The notes: generated by a model not told the origin, from the sequence alone. 13,962 nucleotides of DNA from Paraphysomonas bandaiensis (GCA_965644295.1 CBFFRP010000047.1:1-13962); one strand, 5' to 3'; shown: positions 1,276-13,962, counted from the stretch's first letter. Translations and numbers: made by a program.

Positions 1276-3061
1276 CTATATCAGATAGGTCTGGATAGAG
1301 TGAGCCGGTACGGTATTGATAAGCTCACCGTCGACGCCATCAATCGTGAGGTTCATCATCTGCAGAGCATCACATTACTGTCACTAAAAGCACGCACACA
1401 ACACCACAGCTACCTCAAAATGAAGCAGAGTATATGCAACTCACGCACTCACATATGTATTATTTATCATATATACACTACGTACTTTTACTACTTTCTT
1501 ACCTTGTCTTCCCCTCCACAATTCATCACAATAACCACAATGTCATGCTCTAGATCTTCCACTGACCATGAAGTTACATGGAGAGTGCTTTCGTCACACC
1601 CACCATAAGGCCACTGACAGTCCTCATATGTTGATTGCACATCAGCAGCGGAGTACACCTCGTGGTATACTCGCTCGGCTCCAGGAGGAAGATATCGAGA
1701 AAAGTGACCAAGATAGTAGTATTGGGGATGGTAGTAGACATTGAGTCCATCCTCAGAAGCTATAATAGCTGCATCACAGAAATTATCGACGTGGTTCGGG
1801 CCACCTGTTGAATCGAGTAAAATATTCCAATCGGTCCATCCAGCACTGCCTGACTCAAGATCTCCAATGATATCATACCCATAACCCTCCCCTTTGGACC
1901 AAGTACCATTGACAAGCCATGCCTACATATACAGCCCATGAGATATATAACGCAAACAGGTAGTCATCGAATATGGCGAAATACAAATTCTTCTTCACAT
2001 ATTGCTACACGTTTATTCGATTTAGGGCAAAACACAGAGCATGAATAACTCTTGGGTACCTCATCTGAGGCATCGTCCTCGAGAACAGTAAGCTCGTAAC
2101 ACGCCTCCGAAGGAAGTAGGATTGTTTCGGGATACTTCCCATAAACTGCAGCAACATTCGCGAAGCAACTACCTGAGTACCAGTGAAATGCAATGCCATC
2201 GATATATCGAGATGATGGACTTGACTCAGAAAGTAAGGTGTCTGCCCAGTCAGATATGTGGTCCTTGTTGTGGTCAAATCCGAATATTTTGACATCAGGG
2301 TGGTCTTGCTGCAGCACAGGGCCTAGATAACCACCAACAAATTCACTCATTTCAGAGGCTGTATACAGACATGACTCCCACGTCTGAGATGCCTCAGGCT
2401 CATTCTGTACGGTGACTCCCCATATAGGTACATTCTGGTTCTTATACGCCGTGATCCATTTGGAGTAATAGGATGCCCAAGACGGACGATACTGGTCAAG
2501 TAGAGACCCTCCATAGAGCATATCGTTATTATCTTTCATCCACGCTGGCGGGCTCCAGGGTGATCCAAACAAAAGCAAGTTCGGATTAGAGGCCAATGCG
2601 TCGTGAATCAGAGGTAGAGATAAGTTCTGATCGTACGTAACAGCAGTGTCAAAATAGTTCAAGTTTACATCATCCGCCACGTCATCAAAAGTGTAAACAT
2701 CCACACTAAAATCACAAGAGTGAATAGGCAGCCTTCCAGTGGTATACTTCAGTCCTGACTCGCTGTAGTAAGCGTCAATCACCTCCTTCTTGAGGTCTTT
2801 AGTGAGTGTCTTATAGACAGTAGCGGACGACTGCGTTAAGGCGCCTCCGAACCCCAGTATCTTCTGATACCTCTTAGAGGGGTCGACATGGACCGATATG
2901 AGGTCAGATGATGAGGGTATAGAGGAGGAGGAGAAGAACAGAGGCCTCTGTTGAGTGAGACGATCCTCTGTGGACTGGCAGGTCTGAACCCAATCAACAG
3001 ACACAGAGAGGGAGAGAGAGAGAGAGAGGAAGGTTAACAGAGGGAAGAGAGACTCCTGCAT
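1276..3061 (-). CDS. GBA: Glycoside hydrolase family 30 (glucosylceramidase-like), ~501 aa, 3 exons: 3061-2060, 1922-1503, 1359-1276
   Basis: GH30 motifs: YQKILGFGGALT, RLPIHSCDFS, GSPWSPPAWMK, TVQNEP (acid/base Glu), AFHWY, PSEAC (nucleophile Glu); exon 2 has GWTDWNILLDSTGGPNH and YYLGHFSRY; exon 3 has PAHSIQTY*. Introns 1923-2059 and 1360-1502 are GT-AG and phase 0. ATG at 3061 is preferred over 3232 because it starts a signal-peptide-like MQESLFPLLTFLSLSLSLSVS. The symbol denotes family homology, not proven orthology. Confidence 0.92.
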
Positions 3062-3667
3062 GAGGCTTATGAGAGAGAGGAACGGCACTGGACCACTTGA
3101 CAGAACTATCTGTACATACACTCCACGAACTGTCAGTGTGCATGTCGGATCCACAGTACAGTGCAGTACTTCGTGCCATCGCACACATGAATATGTAGTC
3201 CCTGTATTTCCTGTATGACAAGATATGTACATATCAATTTTACCGATTTTTGCTCATTGTTTAAAAAGTTCACTTTTTATTGAAAAAACGATGACTTTTC
3301 AATGAAATAAACAATGAGCCAAATCGAATTGGACCACGAAATACACTGTATAAATGGTAATACAGCGTATTCTGATCCTGCAGCAGTAGTGCAGTGTATA
3401 CCGCTGTATATGGGGTATACGATGCATATACAGTCACTCAACTGATCAACATACACAGTATACACTGCTGTATACCCTGTTCGTATATAACGACCCACTC
3501 CTGTGTGTATGTAGTGCAGCGTGCAGCACGTGCATATGCATTGAGTCCAGGAGACCGTCACGAGACATGAGAGTGAGAGGGGTGCAGTGCCATCATATCA
3601 GCTCACATGATCTGATCCGACGTATATATATATCAGGTAGAATTACCAGACCCTCACCAACCAAGAG
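3062..3667. promoter_or_regulatory. Divergent (head-to-head) intergenic/promoter region between GH30 and cyclophilin
   Basis: Inferred only from the opposite orientation of the two start codons (3061 minus, 3668 plus). No specific promoter element was identified. Confidence 0.5.
3157..3350. mobile_element. Possible degenerate Tc1/mariner-type MITE or fold-back relic
   Basis: Termini TACAGTGcagTACTTCGTG (3157-3175) and CACGAAATACACTGTA (3335-3350) are imperfect inverted repeats with TA-CAGTG...CACTG-TA ends. Nested IRs: GCTCATTGTTTA (3252-3263)/TAAACAATGAGC (3308-3319) and ATTGAAAA (3279-3286)/TTTTCAAT (3296-3303). Confidence 0.35.
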
Positions 3668-4653
3668 ATGATGGCCTGCAGCCGTATGCTGTGTTTGTTG
3701 ATAGTCCTTGAAGCTCTCGGCTGTGCACTTGCTGACCCCCCTTCCACTGCAACCAAAGTGCACGTATGTCGTATCACTCCATCAACAGTTGAAGTATCTA
3801 ACTTATATACAGTGCAGTACAACCAAAGGTGATTTTTCTCTCGCTGTATACCCTGAATGGGCCCCACTGGGAGCTGCTCGATTCCTTGAATTAGTTGAGG
3901 ACGGCTTCTATACCGGTATTACACTATAGTTATACTTTCCCTCCATAATGTATGCATTTAGATATTGCATTATATCGATGCGTGGATAAGTTTTTGGTCC
4001 AATTCGGCATAACAGAGAACCCAGAAAAGAAGCATTGGCATTTCAAAACCATTGAAGACGATCCTAACCTTCATAAGGGTATCAAGAAGCACTACCTTTC
4101 ATTTGCAGGAGGGGGAGCCAATACACGCTCGACCCAACTGTTTATAGCGTTTGAAGATTTAGATTTCTTGGGAAAAGCCCCGTGGGAAGTACCGTTTGGG
4201 GAAGTGATCGATGGTGGCTCGGTAGTAGATAGTTTTTATAAAGGCAACGGTGACATCCCACCGTTTGGTAAAGGACCTGACCAGCAGATGATTCATAAGC
4301 AAGGGAATGCTTATATACGCCAGAATTTCCCACACACAGACTTTATTCGCTCTTGCTATGTGGAAGTTCCCGCTGCACATCCCAAGCAACCCGCGAATGA
4401 ACCTATCCAGCCCGACACAAGAACAGGCACAGAAAAGCGCCACAACGAAATCATCGACAAGGTTCATAGCTCCCATTCTGAAAGCGATCTGCTGACATCG
4501 TTTCTTAGGAAGCAAACAGCAGGAGAGAATTCTAGTCGTCCGTCCAATGAACTCTCTGCTCTCTTCGCAGTAGTATTTTTATTAGTTGCAATTGCGGTAT
4601 TGTGTTGTCTTTACCAGTTTAAGTCTATACCATCATCAGGAAAATCGTTGTGA
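3668..4653 (+). CDS. Cyclophilin-type peptidyl-prolyl cis-trans isomerase with signal peptide and C-terminal transmembrane helix, ~296 aa, 3 exons: 3668-3763, 3813-3915, 3962-4653
   Basis: Spliced sequence reads MMACSRMLCLLIVLEALGCALA-DPPSTATKVH/CSTTKGDF..WAPLGAARFLELVEDGFYT/DIALYRCVDKFLVQFGI..LSFAGGGANTRSTQLFI..PFGEVIDG, which are cyclophilin fold motifs. Introns 3764-3812 (49 bp, phase 0) and 3916-3961 (46 bp, phase 1) are GT-AG. Hydrophobic LFAVVFLLVAIAVLCCLY lies near the C-terminus. Confidence 0.9.
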
Positions 4654-4895: not shown

Positions 4896-4903
4896 ATCTA
4901 CAT
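4896..4903. repeat. Left 8-bp target site duplication ATCTACAT of the hAT element
   Basis: An identical 8-mer lies at 7316-7323, directly outside the right TIR. Confidence 0.95.
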
Positions 4904-5049
4904 CAGGGATAGGGAACAATATATTGTATTGCAATATATTGTACAATATATTGCAATATATTGTAAAATATATTGATTGGTGGACTGGTCAAATATTCCA
5001 TCAATAGTGTTTCTGTTAATAGAGCTCACAATACTATTGCAATATATTG
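4904..5049. repeat. Left TIR plus subterminal array of palindromic CAATATATTG units
   Basis: Exact copies at 4917, 4932, 4944, 4954 and 5040; variants at 4966 (AAATATATTG) and 5029 (CAATACTATTG). Confidence 0.9.
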
Positions 5050-5280
5050 CAATCAATATTATGATAGTCATATAAGAGAAGATCCTCAACTGTATGGTGC
5101 AAAATATACGCCTCTGTATACAAATATCCGGAAAATAAGAAAAAAAGCCTATTTTTGATGTTATTTTCTATTTTTTATGTATCGCCAGCTCAAACAGCAC
5201 TCTACACCTCTCCACATGTATGTACAGTACTTCTCTTAATATAGTATATATATCCTATAGTGACAAGAAGAGACAACTGA

Positions 5281-7074
5281 ATGATGAGTGCATACAAGAG
5301 TAGGGACATTTACCGCTGTTTTTGGAGTCCGGTCGAAGGTGTCCCGAACAAACACGAGTGTAAAATCTGCGGACGTAAACGACAACAGAATATTCGGAAT
5401 GGATACAACAATCTAAAGGATCACACTTTCTCTCATGATGTGTGGGAGGAGACATTGAAGAGGTATTTACGGGCTGTCTGCACCAATGGTCCCATGGATG
5501 CTTTTGTTCTGCAGCCTTCAGACAAGGCGAAAACAATTTATGAGTGGGTGGAGTGCATTGTCGAGGAAAATCTTCCATTAAATTTCTGTGAGAAGAAATT
5601 AACTAGAAATAAGACTTCTTTGGGTAAGATAACTACAAAAACACTGAAAAAATATATGAGACTGTTGGAACTGAAGCTACGTGATATGATTAAAGATATA
5701 TTACCACCAACATTTGGTCTAGTCATGGACGGTTGGACGTCGGACTCCCACCACTACAGTGCAATATTTGCAACCTTTTGCGACCGAACCAATACTCCGA
5801 ATTTGTTATTGTTGTCTTGTAATGTGCAAGAGGATATTGATGACAACACTGTTTTCGATGAAGATCTACCTGATGAAGAGAAATTCTACGGATTCACTGC
5901 TGCGGATTGGTTTGATACTATCGTAGAAGTTCTCAATAAATTTGGAGTTGAGGTTAACGCTGACAATGTTTGCGACATTGTTGAGTTTTATCTTGGAGAT
6001 AACTGTGCTACAAACAGAAAATTGGCTACTGATTCTGGTAACACCGTATTACTTGTGTGAAATTGTCGAATGTTATAATATATATTAGGTGTACCCCTAG
6101 TTGGATGTGCATCTCACCGACTAAATCTCGCTGTCAATGAACTCATTGGCAGCAAAGAGAAGAGGAATAACCAAGGAGATGTGACAAGATCTGACGAAGG
6201 CATTAGGCCTCTTATTCGCAAAGTAGACCTACTAATGGGGAAGTTGAAGCAGATTAAGAATGCTGCATTGCTACGTGGCCAAACCAGTCTGCTACCAGAA
6301 AGGGTAAATGTCACAAGATGGTCTTCTATGTTTCAGGTTCTCGTAAAGTGGATGCGTATAAAAGATCATGTATTAAAAATTGAAGACTTACCGCTTGCAG
6401 TTACTGATATGATTCCTACTCCTCGACAGAATACCGAAATAATCGCCCTTGTAGACGACCTGAGGAAGTTTGAAAGCGTCTCGAAATTGCTTCAAACTGG
6501 AGGATCAAGTCAAGTGAATCTTTATGAATGCCGGAACATATTTGATGGCTTATTGAGGGACTTTAGGCCAAAGTATCCACTATCTGCTTTACAGAAAAAC
6601 AGTCCCATTGTTAATGATCCGAATTTCGAGAATGGAATTGCAAAACTCCAAGCAGGCGAAGAATTGGACTTGACAAGATCTGAGAAAGATGCTGTTAGAA
6701 TATATCTCCGTTCAGACAGTGATTATTGCAACAATACAGAGGATGATGAAGCTGAAGTTGGCTATGCGGAAAAAATTCTTCAATCAGCTCAAAAACTTAA
6801 GAAGCGAAAAGTTGAAATATCTAAGTACAGGTGCACGAGTCATGTAGTATGTACTTCCAATACGTGTGAACGCCTGTTCAGCGCAGCAAAACTGATTATA
6901 TCAGTGTTGCGCAAACGTATGCATCCTACTACACTTAATATGCTGTTGTTTCTGAAAGCTAACCGACAGTTGTGGCCGGATGCAAGCATATTTCAATCAA
7001 TATTGAATGAATATGGTGATGATGATGTCACCGATGATGGCTCAGAGGATGAGTATGAGGAAACTTTTAATTAG
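5281..7074 (+). CDS. hAT transposase (BED-type zinc finger, DDE catalytic domain, C-terminal dimerisation domain), ~580 aa, 2 exons: 5281-6037, 6089-7074
   Basis: N-terminal FW..CKIC..GYNNLKDH..SH (BED-like); MDGWT (first Asp), GDN (second Asp), GCASHRLNLAV (CxxH), TRWSS, CERLFS (catalytic Glu) and LLFLKAN. A 51-bp GT-AG intron at 6038-6088 (phase 1) joins the two track ORFs in frame as ...LATDSGVPLVGCASH... Confidence 0.95.
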
Positions 7075-7178
7075 TTAAGAGTAGTGGGTTTGATTATCAA
7101 GTGACCTTAGACCTTATAAAATATGGCAAGTACTAAAAATGAAAACTACGGATGTGTTTACTTACTGATTAGTCATAC

Positions 7179-7315
7179 TAATATATTGCAATATATTGTA
7201 CAATATATTGCAATATATTGCAATAGTATTGTAGGGCCGGTTTAAAAAATCCATCAATACTATTGATGGAACGCTACCTAACAATAGTATTGCAATATAT
7301 TGTTCCCTATCCCTG
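7179..7315. repeat. Right subterminal CAATATATTG array plus right TIR
   Basis: Exact copies at 7189, 7201, 7211 and 7293; variants CAATAGTATTG at 7221 and 7282; palindrome TCCATCAATA-C-TATTGATGGA at 7250-7270. Confidence 0.9.
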
Positions 7316-7323
7316 ATCTACAT
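7316..7323. repeat. Right 8-bp target site duplication ATCTACAT
   Basis: Identical to 4896-4903. Confidence 0.95.
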
Positions 7324-7637: not shown

Positions 7638-9443
7638 TCACCCCACAATATCTATTTCCGACTCATCTTCGTCGTCATCACTGGAACTCTCCTCTTCTTC
7701 ATTATCTGCATTGAATATGCTATCCCGATCTGTAGTAACACTACGTGTACTCGTTTCACTCTCGCGTTCTCGACTCTCCTCACATGAACCTGTCGATGAG
7801 GGTTCCATGGATTCGTTATCACGGCCTTGCTCTACATCACGATTAGTCCCAGCGGCAGTAGAGCTAGTTTCCGAACGCGTAGTACAAGACAAACTGATGC
7901 TGTCACGAACGGTGTAAAACTCACCTTCGGATACTGTACAAAAATTATCCAACTAAAATCACAGTGCACTACATACCCGTTGATACAATATCCGGGACCG
8001 TTGTTTGCAATGGTTTAACATCACTTTTAACTTCCTGTTGATCTGGTTTTCCTTCGCTACTGGTGGTAAAAGTTTTTGCATTTTGATTGGGACCGTCTTG
8101 TACATCACGACCTATGGGTCTCGTACGGCTGATCATTTTTCCGTCTGTCTTGTCAATTACACAAGGTCCTCGCGCAGCGCGGCGTTGTCGATGGCCCAGC
8201 AGTGGTTCTTTAGCGCCATCTCTGTCTTTGATGTTTAGATCAGGTCGAGACTCATAGAGTAATGCTTTGTCTTCTCGACTCAGTCGGCGGTAACGGTACA
8301 CCGTGCGCTTGTCTTTTGATATGTCTGCATTTGTTTTTTCTGCATTCTCGAACATAACCGTTTTCTCTTTGAAACTGCGATTCAGGTTTGTATCTGCAGA
8401 TACACCTACGCAGAACCCTAGACCCATCCATTGCATTGCCCGTAGAAAGGAACGATTTAGATGAGGATCCTTAGTTTAAAAAGTAAATCAGAGCTTGTAA
8501 AGGAATGCAAAAAAATACAGTGTTTGTAGAACTACATAAAAATAATTACATGCAAACATATTCGACATGAAAGTGATTGCGGATGAAAGTGATAACATTC
8601 TAAATATCTCTTTAATTCCAAGCATACCTGCATTCCAAACACAAGAAAATTGAAAAATCCAGTGGTGTACAGCAGAATGCGCGACAGAACTTCCAATAGA
8701 GGGCTGTGAATACCACTTATCTCAAGAATATAAAACACAATAGTCGGCGCCCAGCATAACATACAAACTACAATATAGTGGTACATTACGCGCTTCCTGC
8801 GTTTACGCACACTACGCGGAAAAGCTCGTGACGACATTCGCTTCCTCACTTGAAAAAAGGCATAGACATTAATCGAGAATCCGATAGCTATCGGAATAAG
8901 TTCGGTGAACATAACTTCGTACCATTTACCGAGCTTTTCATAGTCCGGTTCACATCCTAGACTATGCTCCCCAGTGTGTTGTTTTATAATAGCTAATAGG
9001 GCTCCAGGCATTGCAAATATATAGACAAAGCTTACGTAAGCGTAGTCGTAGTATCGTGACTCCTCAACCTCCGTAAGCCATTTTCTTTTGCTGACAGCTT
9101 GAACAGCTTCAAACGCAATGACACAAGTCCACAATAAGCTGGATATCCTCGACAGTGTCACGAGAGGGCTGCATACATAACACACCCCCACAGGCACTTT
9201 CCCCGGCTCCCCATAATCACCCTCAAACACCCAAAACAGAGCCTGGATAAAACTCGCACTAAACCATACGCAGTCAGCCAGTGCAAGATTAAGAATCAAT
9301 CTAGCAGCTCTCGGCTTAGATGAGGATGTCTTGACTAAACAATATGACAATATTACAATCAACGAGCCAAGCAAAGACAGAGCACTGCACAGGGCCGTGC
9401 CAAATGTATCAAGCCTAGTGACCAGATTATCCGAGAGTTTCAT
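7638..9443 (-). CDS. Seven-transmembrane GPCR-like protein (cAMP-receptor/GCR1-like) with long charged C-tail, ~534 aa, exons 9443-8628, 8469-7977, 7933-7638
   Basis: Seven hydrophobic segments with family-like motifs SLLGSLIVILSY, RLILNLALAD, C...SSLLWTCVIA, CWAP and GFFNFLVFG. Introns 8470-8627 (phase 0, joins FGMQ/DPHLNRSF) and 7934-7976 (phase 1, joins IVST/VSEGEF) are GT-AG and link three track ORFs. An in-frame TGA two codons upstream fixes the ATG at 9443. A possible extra intron (GTGAGT donor at 7641, acceptor at 7536) would change the C-terminus to ...IVGNLLSWVF*. Confidence 0.85.
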
Positions 9444-9536: not shown

Positions 9537-9752
9537 ATACATACATACATACATACATACATACATACATACATACATACATACATACATACATACATAC
9601 ATACATACATACATACATACATACATACATACATACATACATACATACATACATACATACATACATACATACATACATACATACATACATACATACATAC
9701 ATACATACATACATACATACATACATACATACATACATACATACATACATAC

Positions 9753-9783
<31 letters not shown>

Positions 9784-9815
9784 CATACACACACATACAT
9801 ACATACGTACATACA

Positions 9816-9845
<30 letters not shown>
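9537..9845. repeat. (ATAC)n / (TATG)n tetranucleotide microsatellite, ~77 units
   Basis: Directly visible: 54 uninterrupted units at 9537-9752, then interruptions near 9753, 9789-9795 and 9807. Confidence 0.99.
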
Positions 9846-9850
<5 letters not shown>

Positions 9851-9864
9851 TCAGTAGAGTACCT

Positions 9865-11611
9865 ATAACGAAAGAAAATCGGCCCCCTCAAAAAAATCGG
9901 CCCCCCTTTTCATCATCCATTTTCCCACCCCCCCTTGAACTGATATGCACATACACACATGACATTAACTCCAACACCACAACTAACCACAACATACACC
10001 AATACAATCAGACACATACACGCTCTCTTTACAATGGAGTATGTCAACATTATATGCAGTCATTTTCACCATCACACCCTGTGTCTCGAGTGATTAGACA
10101 GAGGAGCCCTGTGTCCTCAGGATGGCTATTGATCGCTATATGCAGAGCAGTGGGATACATTAACCACTACTGAGACTCTATATGCGACTTACTACTGCAG
10201 AAAAAGTGTTTGGAGAGGTGAGAGGGTGTGGGAGGGTCACGTATCATCTCTGTGGCTTGGATTCTGTGCCGGTCAGTATTTGTCCATAAAGAGGAGGGGT
10301 CCATACAGTGCACATCAGGTCATACATTCACCAGAAATTTGAAATGCGCCAAAATAATAGGCCATATCGATGGATGGAGGGCATTGATATGGCATATCAA
10401 CCAATTTGATTAGATTTAAGTGCACCGCTGCCGTCCGTAGAAATTATGTGGATATGCTACCTTGTCACCATCCGAGTCAGCTTATCAGTGTCGGAACCGA
10501 CTTATCGAATGGAAGATAAGCGATATTTATTTGGTAGAAAGAGATTTGGCACTTTATGGGCTTCCTTGTGCGTTGTACAATGATTAATGTTGCAAATACC
10601 CTTGACTAGCTTGTTGGTTGCAGACACCCCATGTTAGGGTGCTGTAGGGTCACAGCAAGCAGTGTTCACTCATGTCATATATGTAGGATACCTAATATAT
10701 TGCACTCATTCAGCTTTATTGGGGTCTTGTTACATCTACAATGCCATTGTTGCCATAGTTGTCGATTTAAATGGGCTTTACGGCGAGTGCAGCTGATGAT
10801 TGTTGAAAGTCTATACATGTCTAGTCTTTGTTGGCTATTCTCAAGACTTTGTCCCGAACTATCTCTCCACGCGACTTGTGTGAATGTGTATGTTTTATGT
10901 CTATACATATATATTACCTTTGTATGTACTTTATATGCACATGTGTGTACTACGTTTCCCTTATGTTTACTAGGTTTATATGGGTGTACGTGGTTTATTA
11001 TATATATTACCTACAATGCTTCATATAAGCGTCAGTGTTCGAATATATGTACTCTTGACTTATGTATGCATATACGAGCGTTCTGAATGTATGTGTATCT
11101 GTGTGTTGTCATGTAGATATTTATAATAATATGATATCGTTATAGTCGATGTGAACTTGCTTGTATAAGTACTAGTCATAGTAAAGTAGCTATATATATA
11201 TGTAGATCTTAAATACAACGATTGGCAGTATGTGGTTACAAGAAGTATAGGTATAAGGTATAAGTTAGCTTATCACACAAGTGTCTAAATCTAAACTACG
11301 AAGGAGTACAGTAGCTGATTTATATTGACAGAAGTAGTGTACTATTCCAAGTTATATGTGGGCTAGCATCGAGGTATTAGCTGGAATAATTACATGCATA
11401 ACAAGACAGTATACTATCAAACCACACATATACCGGCATGAATTTATAAGCAAATATTAGAATATTAGTCAAGTGGTTATGGTTATCTAGTTTCAAAATA
11501 GCAATCAATAGACGATAACAACCTAGGAATTATAAGCACACTATCAGTACTCTCGCCACTAAACAGATTAGTTGGGAATATGTGCGAACAATAGCATACA
11601 ACTACGCAATG
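9865..11611 (+). repeat. Left arm (>=1747 bp) of a long inverted repeat
   Basis: Reverse complement of 12180-13962. Mirror-image ORFs in the track (10228..10413 vs 13414..13599; 10631..11086 vs 12708..13196) confirm the symmetry. Confidence 0.98.
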
Positions 11612-12179
11612 GTACAACGAACTATTGAATGTCCTTAAATCGAATTAGTCATTTTAAGTTCAAGTGCTCCTGGTTTTAGGAGCAGCTAGAACTGATAGAG
11701 CATGTACAATTTGTCTCCGCCTATCAAAGTAATATCAGCTCTACGTTTCGATTAAGACTCTGATTTTCTTTTTAAAGTGTCAAGTTCTTTCATTTGTTGC
11801 TCTTTACAGCGCATCTTCTGCCTTTTTTATTCTTTTCCTTTCTGCTTTATAGCTGTTGCTGTCTTGAAACCTTTATACGAATATTTTCTTCATCCACATG
11901 TATTCTATAATGAACTTAAGATCTCCAGCAGCCATCTCCGCTTTGTATCTTTCAACAACTACTTCATGATTAACACTCTTTGACTAAAGTTCAACATGCG
12001 TGAGATTATTATGACAAATGATGGTAGTACCAGGTTTAATACCACCCTCAACCAACTCTCTATGTGCTGCGCGACAACGAAGTGTGACATAAACGAAAAC
12101 ACAAGAAATTCAGTCAAACATTACATCTACCACTTCATCCAGTATTATCACTGAAAACGTAATACTTAAACCATTAAAA
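11612..12179 (-). pseudogene. Unique spacer of the inverted repeat; possible decayed gene fragment
   Basis: Minus frame 12064-11876 reads HRELVEGGIKPGTTIICHNNLTHVEL*SKSVNHEVVVERYKAEMAAGDLKFIIEYMWMKKIFV with one stop. It is preceded by an intron-like GTAATG...cgcgcAG (12124-12067) and followed by K/E/R-rich broken frames. No family was recognised. Confidence 0.3.
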
Positions 12180-13962
12180 CATTGCGTAGTTGTATGCTAT
12201 TGTTCGCACATATTCCCAACTAATCTGTTTAGTGGCGAGAGTACTGATAGTGTGCTTATAATTCCTAGGTTGTTATCGTCTATTGATTGCTATTTTGAAA
12301 CTAGATAACCATAACCACTTGACTAATATTCTAATATTTGCTTATAAATTCATGCCGGTATATGTGTGGTTTGATAGTGTACTGTCTTGTTATGCATGTA
12401 ATTATTCCAGCTAATACCTCGATGCTAGCCCACATATAACTTGGAATAGTACACTACTTCTGTCAATATAAATCAGCTACTGTACTCCTTCGTAGTTTAG
12501 ATTTAGACACTTGTGTGATAAGCTAACTTATACCTTATACCTATACTTCTTGTAAACACATACTGCCAATCGTTGTATTTAAGATCTACATATATATATA
12601 GCTACTTTACTATGACTAGTACTTATACAAGCAAGTTCACATCGACTATAACGATATCATATTATTATTATAAATATCTACATGACAACACACAGATACA
12701 CATACATTCAGAACGCTCGTATATATATGCATACAAAAACACACAGGTAACATATTCTCATACATAAGTCAAGAGTACATATATTCGAACACTGACGCTT
12801 ATATGAAGCATTGTAGGTAATATATATAATAAACCTCGTACACCCATATAAACCTAGTAAACATAAGGGAAACGTAGTACACACATGTGCATATAAAGTA
12901 CATACAAAGGTAATATATATGTATAGACATAAAACATACACATTCACACAAGTCGCGTGGAGAGATAGTTCGGGACAAAGTCTTGAGAATAGCCAACAAA
13001 GACTAGACATGTATAGACTTTCAACAATCATCAGCTGCACTCGCCGTAAAGCCCATTTAAATCGACAACTATGGCAACAATGGCATTGTAGATGTAACAA
13101 GACCCCAATAAAGCTGAATGAGTGCAATATATTAGGTATCCTACATATATGACATGAGTGAACACTGCTTGCTGTGACCCTACAGCACCCTAACATGGGG
13201 TGTCTGCAACCAACAAGCTAGTCAAGGGTATTTGCAACATTAATCATTGTACAACGCACAAGGAAGCCCATAAAGTGCCAAATCTCTTTCTACCAAATAA
13301 ATATCGCTTATCTTCCATTCGATAAGTCGGTTCCGACACTGATAAGCTGACTCGGATGGTGACAAGGTAGCATATCCACATAATTTCTACGGACGGCAGC
13401 GGTGCACTTAAATCTAATCAAATTGGTTGATATGCCATATCAATGCCCTCCATCCATCGATATGGCCTATTATTTTGGCGCATTTCAAATTTCTGGTGAA
13501 TGTATGACCTGATGTGCACTGTATGGACCCCTCCTCTTTATGGACAAATACTGACCGGCACAGAATCCAAGCCACAGAGATGATACGTGACCCTCCCACA
13601 CCCTCTCACCTCTCCAAACACTTTTTCTGCAGTAGTAAGTCGCATATAGAGTCTCAGTAGTGGTTAATGTATCCCACTGCTCTGCATATAGCGATCAATA
13701 GCCATCCTGAGGACACAGGGCTCCTCTGTCTAATCACTCGAGACACAGGGTGTGATGGTGAAAATGACTGCATATAATGTTGACATACTCCATTGTAAAG
13801 AGAGCGTGTATGTGTCTGATTGTATTGGTGTATGTTGTGGTTAGTTGTGGTGTTGGAGTTAATGTCATGTGTGTATGTGCATATCAGTTCAAGGGGGGGG
13901 GGGAAAATGGATGATGAAAAGGGGGGCCGATTTTTTTGAGGGGGCCGATTTTCTTTCGTTAT
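12180..13962 (-). repeat. Right arm (>=1783 bp, truncated by the window end) of the long inverted repeat
   Basis: Matches 9865-11611 except for at least 4 substitutions (left positions 9927, 10991, 11235, 11412) and 3 indels totalling 36 bp (29+4+3) present only in this arm. Confidence 0.98.

Follow-up and report, generated by a model that had tools for sequence, protein, structure and literature searches.

A probable non-autonomous fold-back element with 1.75-kb arms in Paraphysomonas bandaiensis and in marine metagenomes

The DNA analyzed here is a stretch of 13,962 nt from Paraphysomonas bandaiensis (GCA_965644295.1 CBFFRP010000047.1:1-13962), referred to below as the window, and its last part, positions 9865-13962, forms a fold-back. 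Repeat search and pairwise alignment have resolved this part into an inverted repeat of about 4.1 kb in total, in which two arms of about 1.75 kb enclose a middle of 568 nt. The region is probably one copy of a non-autonomous class II element with fold-back architecture. This reading is built on direct observations of the architecture, of its recurrence in independent samples, of a sharp outer end, of at least two flanking contexts and of the lack of coding capacity. The family is new and of the known fold-back kind. No target site duplication (TSD) was observed and no autonomous relative was found, and the element is therefore not assigned to a superfamily. The element consists of the following parts, given in window coordinates.

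9862..11611, plus strand: left arm (terminal inverted repeat, TIR), from outer to inner end, defined by repeat search, alignment and comparison with related contigs.
11612..12179, no strand: middle domain (spacer), unique and non-coding, 568 nt, 35.6 % GC.
12180..13962, minus strand: right arm (TIR), defined by repeat search and alignment, running into the window end.
9872-9887 and 9890-9905 (feature 9872..9905), plus strand: direct repeats of AARAAAATCGGCCCCC in the left arm.
13922-13937 and 13940-13955: mirror images of AARAAAATCGGCCCCC in the right arm.
10631..11086, plus strand: open reading frame (ORF) of 151 amino acids (aa) in the left arm, mirrored in the right arm by a 162-aa ORF at 12708-13196, minus strand.

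Inside the window the left arm measures 1747 nt (9865-11611) and the right arm 1783 nt (12180-13962), and together they make up 86 % of the unit, the middle being the remainder. The alignment of arm with arm gave 1742 identical columns, 5 substitutions and 2 indels of 33 nt and 3 nt, both of them insertions in the right arm relative to the left. Identity is 99.7 % over aligned bases and 97.7 % when the indel columns are counted. An inverted repeat of 1.7 kb cannot arise by chance. The initial annotation had described a fold-back with arms at 9865-11611 and from 12180 to 13962 or beyond, a 568-bp spacer and more than 99 % identity, and repeat search and alignment have confirmed this description together with the sharp inner boundaries that it claimed: past the sequence ...CGCAATG the left and right continuations are unrelated at once. 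The spacer has no internal symmetry and no tandem repeats within its 568 nt. Tandem Repeats Finder (TRF) detected no tandem arrays in the arms, and their only internal repeat is the 16-nt subterminal direct repeat AARAAAATCGGCCCCC, which the repeat search placed twice near each end, about 8 nt from the tip. These repeats are candidate protein-binding sites.

Independent copies of the element are present in marine metagenomes. The 162-aa right-arm ORF is on record in one Tara Oceans contig, and its cluster at 90 % identity has 19 members, all from ENA and Logan assemblies. Overall, the fold-back element has been recovered in at least 8 samples, on about 21 contigs. The contigs compared with the window (L001-L008, from metagenome assemblies of at least 8 samples) carry fold-back sequence at about 98-99 % identity. 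Contig L002 (Tara ERR868432, 2442 nt) runs from the outer arm end through the left arm and all 568 nt of the spacer (98.1 % identity) into 134 nt of the right arm. Within this 134-nt overlap its own two arms are an 18-nt indel apart, and they are therefore two distinct arms, not one graph path walked twice. The same contig has a single AARAAAATCGGCCCCC unit instead of two. The left inner junction is also crossed by L001, by 85 nt, and the right inner junction by L003 (349 nt), L004 (31 nt) and L008 (530 nt); L006 terminates exactly at the inner arm end, as a branch point would give. Since independent contigs cross both junctions, the fold-back is real DNA. All eight inner-arm ends seen (two each in the window and L002, one each in L001, L003, L004 and L008) enter the spacer and none enters another interior. 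The spacer is 98.1-98.9 % identical in three other contigs, and its conservation equals that of the arms. Substitutions between copies amount to 0.2-1.9 %, and those between the two arms of the window to 0.29 %. The alleles are not bound to one arm: L001 lies on the left edge of the spacer yet carries the right-arm alleles of the window, including the 33-nt insertion, and L003 lies on the right edge yet is without that insertion. Such swapping of arm alleles fits exchange between arms or between copies.

In the window, the outer limit of the inverted repeat is imposed solely by the window end, where position 13962 pairs with 9865. In related contigs homology extends about 3 nt beyond this limit, to window position 9862 (CCTATAACG... 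inward), and the window end truncates the right arm, which stops about 3 nt, or as many as about 20 nt, before the element terminus. The outer flank is kept in three contigs only, L003 (12 nt), L004 (95 nt) and L005 (129 nt), and the window and these three are alike only from 9862 inward. The L004 and L005 flanks have no match to one another or anywhere in the window, whose own left flank is an (ATAC)n microsatellite. One insertion has two flanks, so that three unrelated flanks require at least two loci. Because homology stops at the outer arm end in other copies, the repeated unit is the fold-back itself and not the neighboring genes. The same observation contradicts a proposal of the initial annotation, in which the fold-back was the center of a larger chromosomal palindrome. 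Word searches for translated tails, run with two terminus-crossing ORFs, yielded no further flanks: they returned a single additional protein, which ends at the terminus, and otherwise nothing. An exact look-up of the neighboring seven-transmembrane (7TM) receptor ORF in the collection that holds the element found no record, and the best match to the GH30 ORF of the window was 76 %. The element has been recovered far more widely than these host genes, which would be the pattern of a multi-copy or widespread repeat in low-coverage metagenomes.

No coding capacity was detected in the element. Pfam searches with the stop-to-stop frames of at least 53 aa in arm and spacer gave zero matches even at E<=10. 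The sole sizeable ORF is the 151/162-aa frame of the arms, which is rich in Cys, His and Leu and follows TG/CA-rich DNA. In ten aligned copies its variable sites are distributed over codon positions 1/2/3 as 6/6/4, and 11 of the changes are nonsynonymous, 4 synonymous. The C-terminal part is frame-shifted in at least four of 15 cluster members; two members continue beyond the usual stop codon, and 11 residues are missing from two. Judging from this sequence variation, the ORF is not a gene and is not under coding constraint. An impression that it was more conserved than its flanks, gained from L001 and the window, was dropped after the ten-sequence alignment. Exact look-ups of the left-arm ORF, three spacer ORFs and nine further arm ORFs found no record. 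With Pfam blank and the ORF neutral by codon position and frame-shifted, the earlier statement that the fold-back holds no transposase and no credible protein stands. Rfam (E<=1) and ARAGORN, run over the window, found no RNA family or tRNA in the arms or the spacer. The sub-threshold matches to Rfam microRNA models in the window lie only on the microsatellite and on the subterminal repeats of a hAT-type transposon; those to mir-297, mir-1277 and mir-3149 on the (ATAC)n tract are repeat effects.

Two further observations concern the records of these contigs. A 55-aa spacer ORF (L002:2116-2280, minus strand, P0138) was found clustered with a 403-aa dephospho-CoA kinase of Mycobacterium (P0139); the pairing was rejected, BLASTP similarity being nil, and the shared '90 %' cluster reflects a quirk of the collection's clustering, without biological meaning. 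The recorded gene calls on L003:1-564 and L004:2-592 hold in-frame stops under table 11, and two of the genes carry a flag that their translation does not give the query; a different genetic code or displaced coordinates in the source pipelines may be the cause.

As a non-autonomous class II element, the fold-back would be moved in trans, by cut-and-paste, by a transposase encoded elsewhere. Such a transposase would recognize the termini and perhaps also the 16-nt subterminal repeats that lie there in pairs. The long arms would be kept alike by exchange from arm to arm and from copy to copy, a step suggested by alleles, the 33-nt indel among them, that sit on one arm in some copies and on the other arm in others. 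By virtue of its sequence, a palindrome of this length can also form a DNA hairpin or cruciform, and a transcript of it could form hairpin RNA.

Several points weigh against the transposon reading. A transposase-bearing relative with the same termini was not found at the eight inner junctions or in exact scans; in JGI metagenome contigs, exact-pattern scans gave 0 matches to the inner and 0 to the outer arm end, and those of IMG/VR likewise gave 0 and 0, exact matching being blind to diverged relatives and the organism being absent from the DNA collections searched. The arms are without the internal tandem repeats typical of the TIRs of classical Foldback, Galileo and Tetris. A TSD was not observable, since the window breaks off within the right arm and 0 of the retrieved contigs have both flanks. 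The flank of L003 could be a further locus, but its 12 nt are too short to count. The terminus itself is uncertain: L003, L004 and L005 share another 8-18 nt (TGTAYTCC...) directly outside 9862, where the window copy lacks these bases or has diverged from them. Outside the common boundary, L004:78-98 and L005:112-132 have about 16 of 18 nt in common (CTCRCTCT..TGTATT), L003 agrees at about 10 of 14, and the window copy differs. The left tip in the window may therefore be damaged or degenerate, with the true tip up to 18 nt further out, or the outside bases may reflect a target preference. Assemblers may have mixed copies, and the 0.29 % by which the two arms of the window differ could then combine variants from several of them. 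The metagenome contigs may also derive from more than one species.

The other explanations differ in how much of this evidence they can accommodate. A palindrome at the end of a contig is a classic assembly artefact. The fold-back could accordingly be a chimera, or two haplotypes joined head-to-head at the contig end: the repeat lies at the very end of the window with its right arm cut there, the divergence between the arms is of allelic size (0.29 %), and L001, which is attached to the spacer on its left, has right-arm alleles. The two junctions and the complete spacer nevertheless recur in other samples and with other assemblers (L002, L003, L004, L008), and L002 holds two distinguishable arms on one contig. 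An artefact is extremely improbable on this evidence, and the misassembly or chimera that the initial annotation had allowed for is contradicted by L002, which spans both junctions. A palindromic (inversion) duplication confined to one locus, not mobile and possibly the center of a larger chromosomal palindrome, would agree with an in-window symmetry that is bounded only by the window end and with a right flank of the window copy that lies beyond the sequence. Such a duplication is very unlikely, given that homology in L003, L004 and L005 ends at the same outer point, that two long flanks are unrelated to the microsatellite and receptor flank and to each other, and that the element has been recovered far more widely than the neighboring genes. 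Equally hard to sustain as the artefact is a virus-like integrant, such as a Polinton/Maverick or virophage, that has lost its interior and kept only its terminal repeats. The arm length is in the range generally reported for such elements, as the initial annotation had pointed out, but Pfam left no traces of pPolB, integrase, capsid, protease or ATPase in the frames searched, the inner and outer arm ends are without exact matches in IMG/VR, and no copy with a larger interior occurs among the eight junctions. The annotation's candidate of a novel non-autonomous giant-TIR element or a Polinton/virophage remnant thus divides: its first half gains from a unit that recurs, has a sharp end and differing flanks and is non-coding, and its second half loses with the lack of polymerase, integrase and capsid traces and of arm ends in IMG/VR.

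Two explanations are unlikely to a lesser degree. The unit could be a composite: a separate 1.75-kb repeat (a solo long terminal repeat, LTR, or another element), present in two inverted copies, would have trapped the 568 nt, and the whole would then have spread by duplication. The arm starts with TG... in three copies and ends with ...CA three bases before arm-arm identity ends, and the spacer opens with TGG one base after this CA, weakly like a primer-binding site by the general lore of LTR elements. The composite is opposed by the inner-arm ends, 8 of 8 of which enter the spacer and none another interior, and by the two sides of the spacer, which differ and so are not two identical primer-binding sites. 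The spacer also holds no segment matching the outer ends of the arms, as a DIRS-like element would need, and Pfam gave no traces of gag, pol, reverse transcriptase or recombinase. An LTR or DIRS-like retroelement as such is not supported: the arms are inverted and not direct, a tip-matching spacer segment is lacking, and there are no reverse transcriptase, integrase or tyrosine recombinase traces. About as improbable as the composite is an endogenous locus for hairpin RNA that generates small interfering RNA (siRNA) and is kept for that function. It would draw on near-perfect complementarity over 1.75 kb with a 568-nt loop, on a unit conserved at 98-99 % across samples, and on the general knowledge that such structures give double-stranded hairpin RNA when transcribed, as Mu killer does in maize. 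Several loci with differing flanks are, however, the behavior of a transposon, and arms and spacer are evenly conserved, at a level that does not exceed the expectation for young copies; all contigs of stated type are metagenomic. A hairpin-RNA role would be compatible with the non-autonomous giant-TIR reading. There is a somewhat slimmer chance that the fold-back is a widespread element of ocean protists and not an inert passenger of an ordinary transposase, with the hairpin as its functional part, either as a conserved source of hairpin-derived small RNA policing a transposon family or through a hairpin- or palindrome-dependent spread without a TIR transposase of a known superfamily. A non-autonomous fold-back element of class II is the reading best supported.

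Outside the element, the window has the character of eukaryotic, non-human nuclear DNA. The following features were recognized outside the element.

1964-3232, minus strand: GH30 glucosylceramidase-like ORF.
3952-4653: cyclophilin-like ORF.
4904-7315: hAT-type transposon, with TIRs that start CAGGGATAGGGAAC and many subterminal CAATATATTG motifs.
8532-9443, minus strand: 7TM-receptor ORF, starting about 420 bp from the fold-back, which lies upstream of the receptor gene.
9537..9849, no strand: (ATAC)n microsatellite, about 79 units long, which separates the 7TM-receptor ORF from the left terminus and is not part of the element.

The GH30 gene is probably spliced, because the profile match of its ORF is confined to positions 1-266 of 348, with about 120 non-homologous residues ahead of it. 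Its closest relatives (70-76 %) are all environmental metagenome or transcriptome sequences, suggesting sparse sampling of the host lineage; the best named one is from the pelagophyte Aureoumbra (50 %). The hAT-type transposon is bounded by a perfect 8-bp duplication, ATCTACAT, at 4896-4903 and 7316-7323. Its transposase-like frame is interrupted once, giving two ORFs (an intron or a break), and the match to the hAT dimerization domain is weak (E 9.5e-4, below the Pfam cut-off). The termini of this transposon are unrelated to those of the fold-back. Near the start of the window, an inverted repeat at 156-326 has 52-nt arms that are 94 % complementary and 67 nt apart; it is hairpin-like, lies in a stretch of 23 % GC and may be a miniature inverted-repeat transposable element (MITE). 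It is followed by a 38-nt tandem duplication at 323-398.

The analysis turns a contig-terminal palindrome that resembles an assembly artefact into a genuine repeated element of a marine eukaryote. The termini, junctions and spacer provide a defined probe for counting copies and insertion sites in Tara Oceans reads. Long palindromes break assemblies and can drive inversions, and the element is relevant in this respect to the quality of metagenome-assembled protist genomes. Apart from these points and the comparisons below, it belongs to an ordinary class of repeat.

Among known systems, Mu killer of maize is alike in being a long inverted duplication of transposon sequence that can be folded into hairpin RNA. 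Mu killer, however, is one rearranged locus that arose from a known autonomous element, whereas the fold-back here is a repeated unit. The long-TIR members of the Mutator-like and Polinton/Maverick groups likewise end in inverted repeats that are hundreds to thousands of bases long, but these groups are defined by their proteins and TSD length, and here no such protein trace was found and the TSD is not observable. Mutator-like elements, the superfamily to which most fold-back elements belong (PMC4079207), are recognized by a TSD of 9-11 bp and a MULE (Mutator-like element) transposase, and for the present element neither TSD nor partner was obtained.

The same general layout is found in FB of Drosophila melanogaster, in Tetris (PMC4079207) and in Tm1 of root-knot nematodes (PMC3169594). 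Classical Foldback elements are similar in that the majority of their copies are non-autonomous and a partner that supplies the transposase has often not been identified. Their TIRs are modular and built of short tandem-repeat arrays, whereas the arms described here are of complex unique sequence with a 16-nt unit present twice; their TSDs of 8-10 bp are Mutator-like, and that of the present element is not observable. Galileo, of the P superfamily in Drosophila, has its longest TIRs in copies without transposase, and its '2-TIR' copies, which are nearly all two long inverted arms with a short non-coding center, are alike in design (PMC3573991). Sequence exchange between arms and between copies has been reported for Galileo (PMC3573991) and would be a further likeness. 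Galileo differs in its 7-bp TSD and P-like transposase (PMC3573991), neither of which was observed here, in the internal tandem repeats that are frequent in its TIRs and absent from these arms, and in its host, an insect and not a marine protist; sequence similarity is nil. Its TIRs reach about 1.25 kb, the maximum in D. mojavensis (PMC3573991), and are exceeded by the arms of about 1.75 kb described here, which attain this length without the classical tandem-repeat build. TIR length does not define a superfamily (PMC3573991). Overall, the architecture matches that of published non-autonomous fold-back or '2-TIR' elements (PMC3573991, PMC4079207, PMC3169594). The fold-back form evolves repeatedly, through transposase loss and TIR elongation (PMC4079207, PMC3573991), and the present element adds a further case for its independent origin in different transposon lineages.

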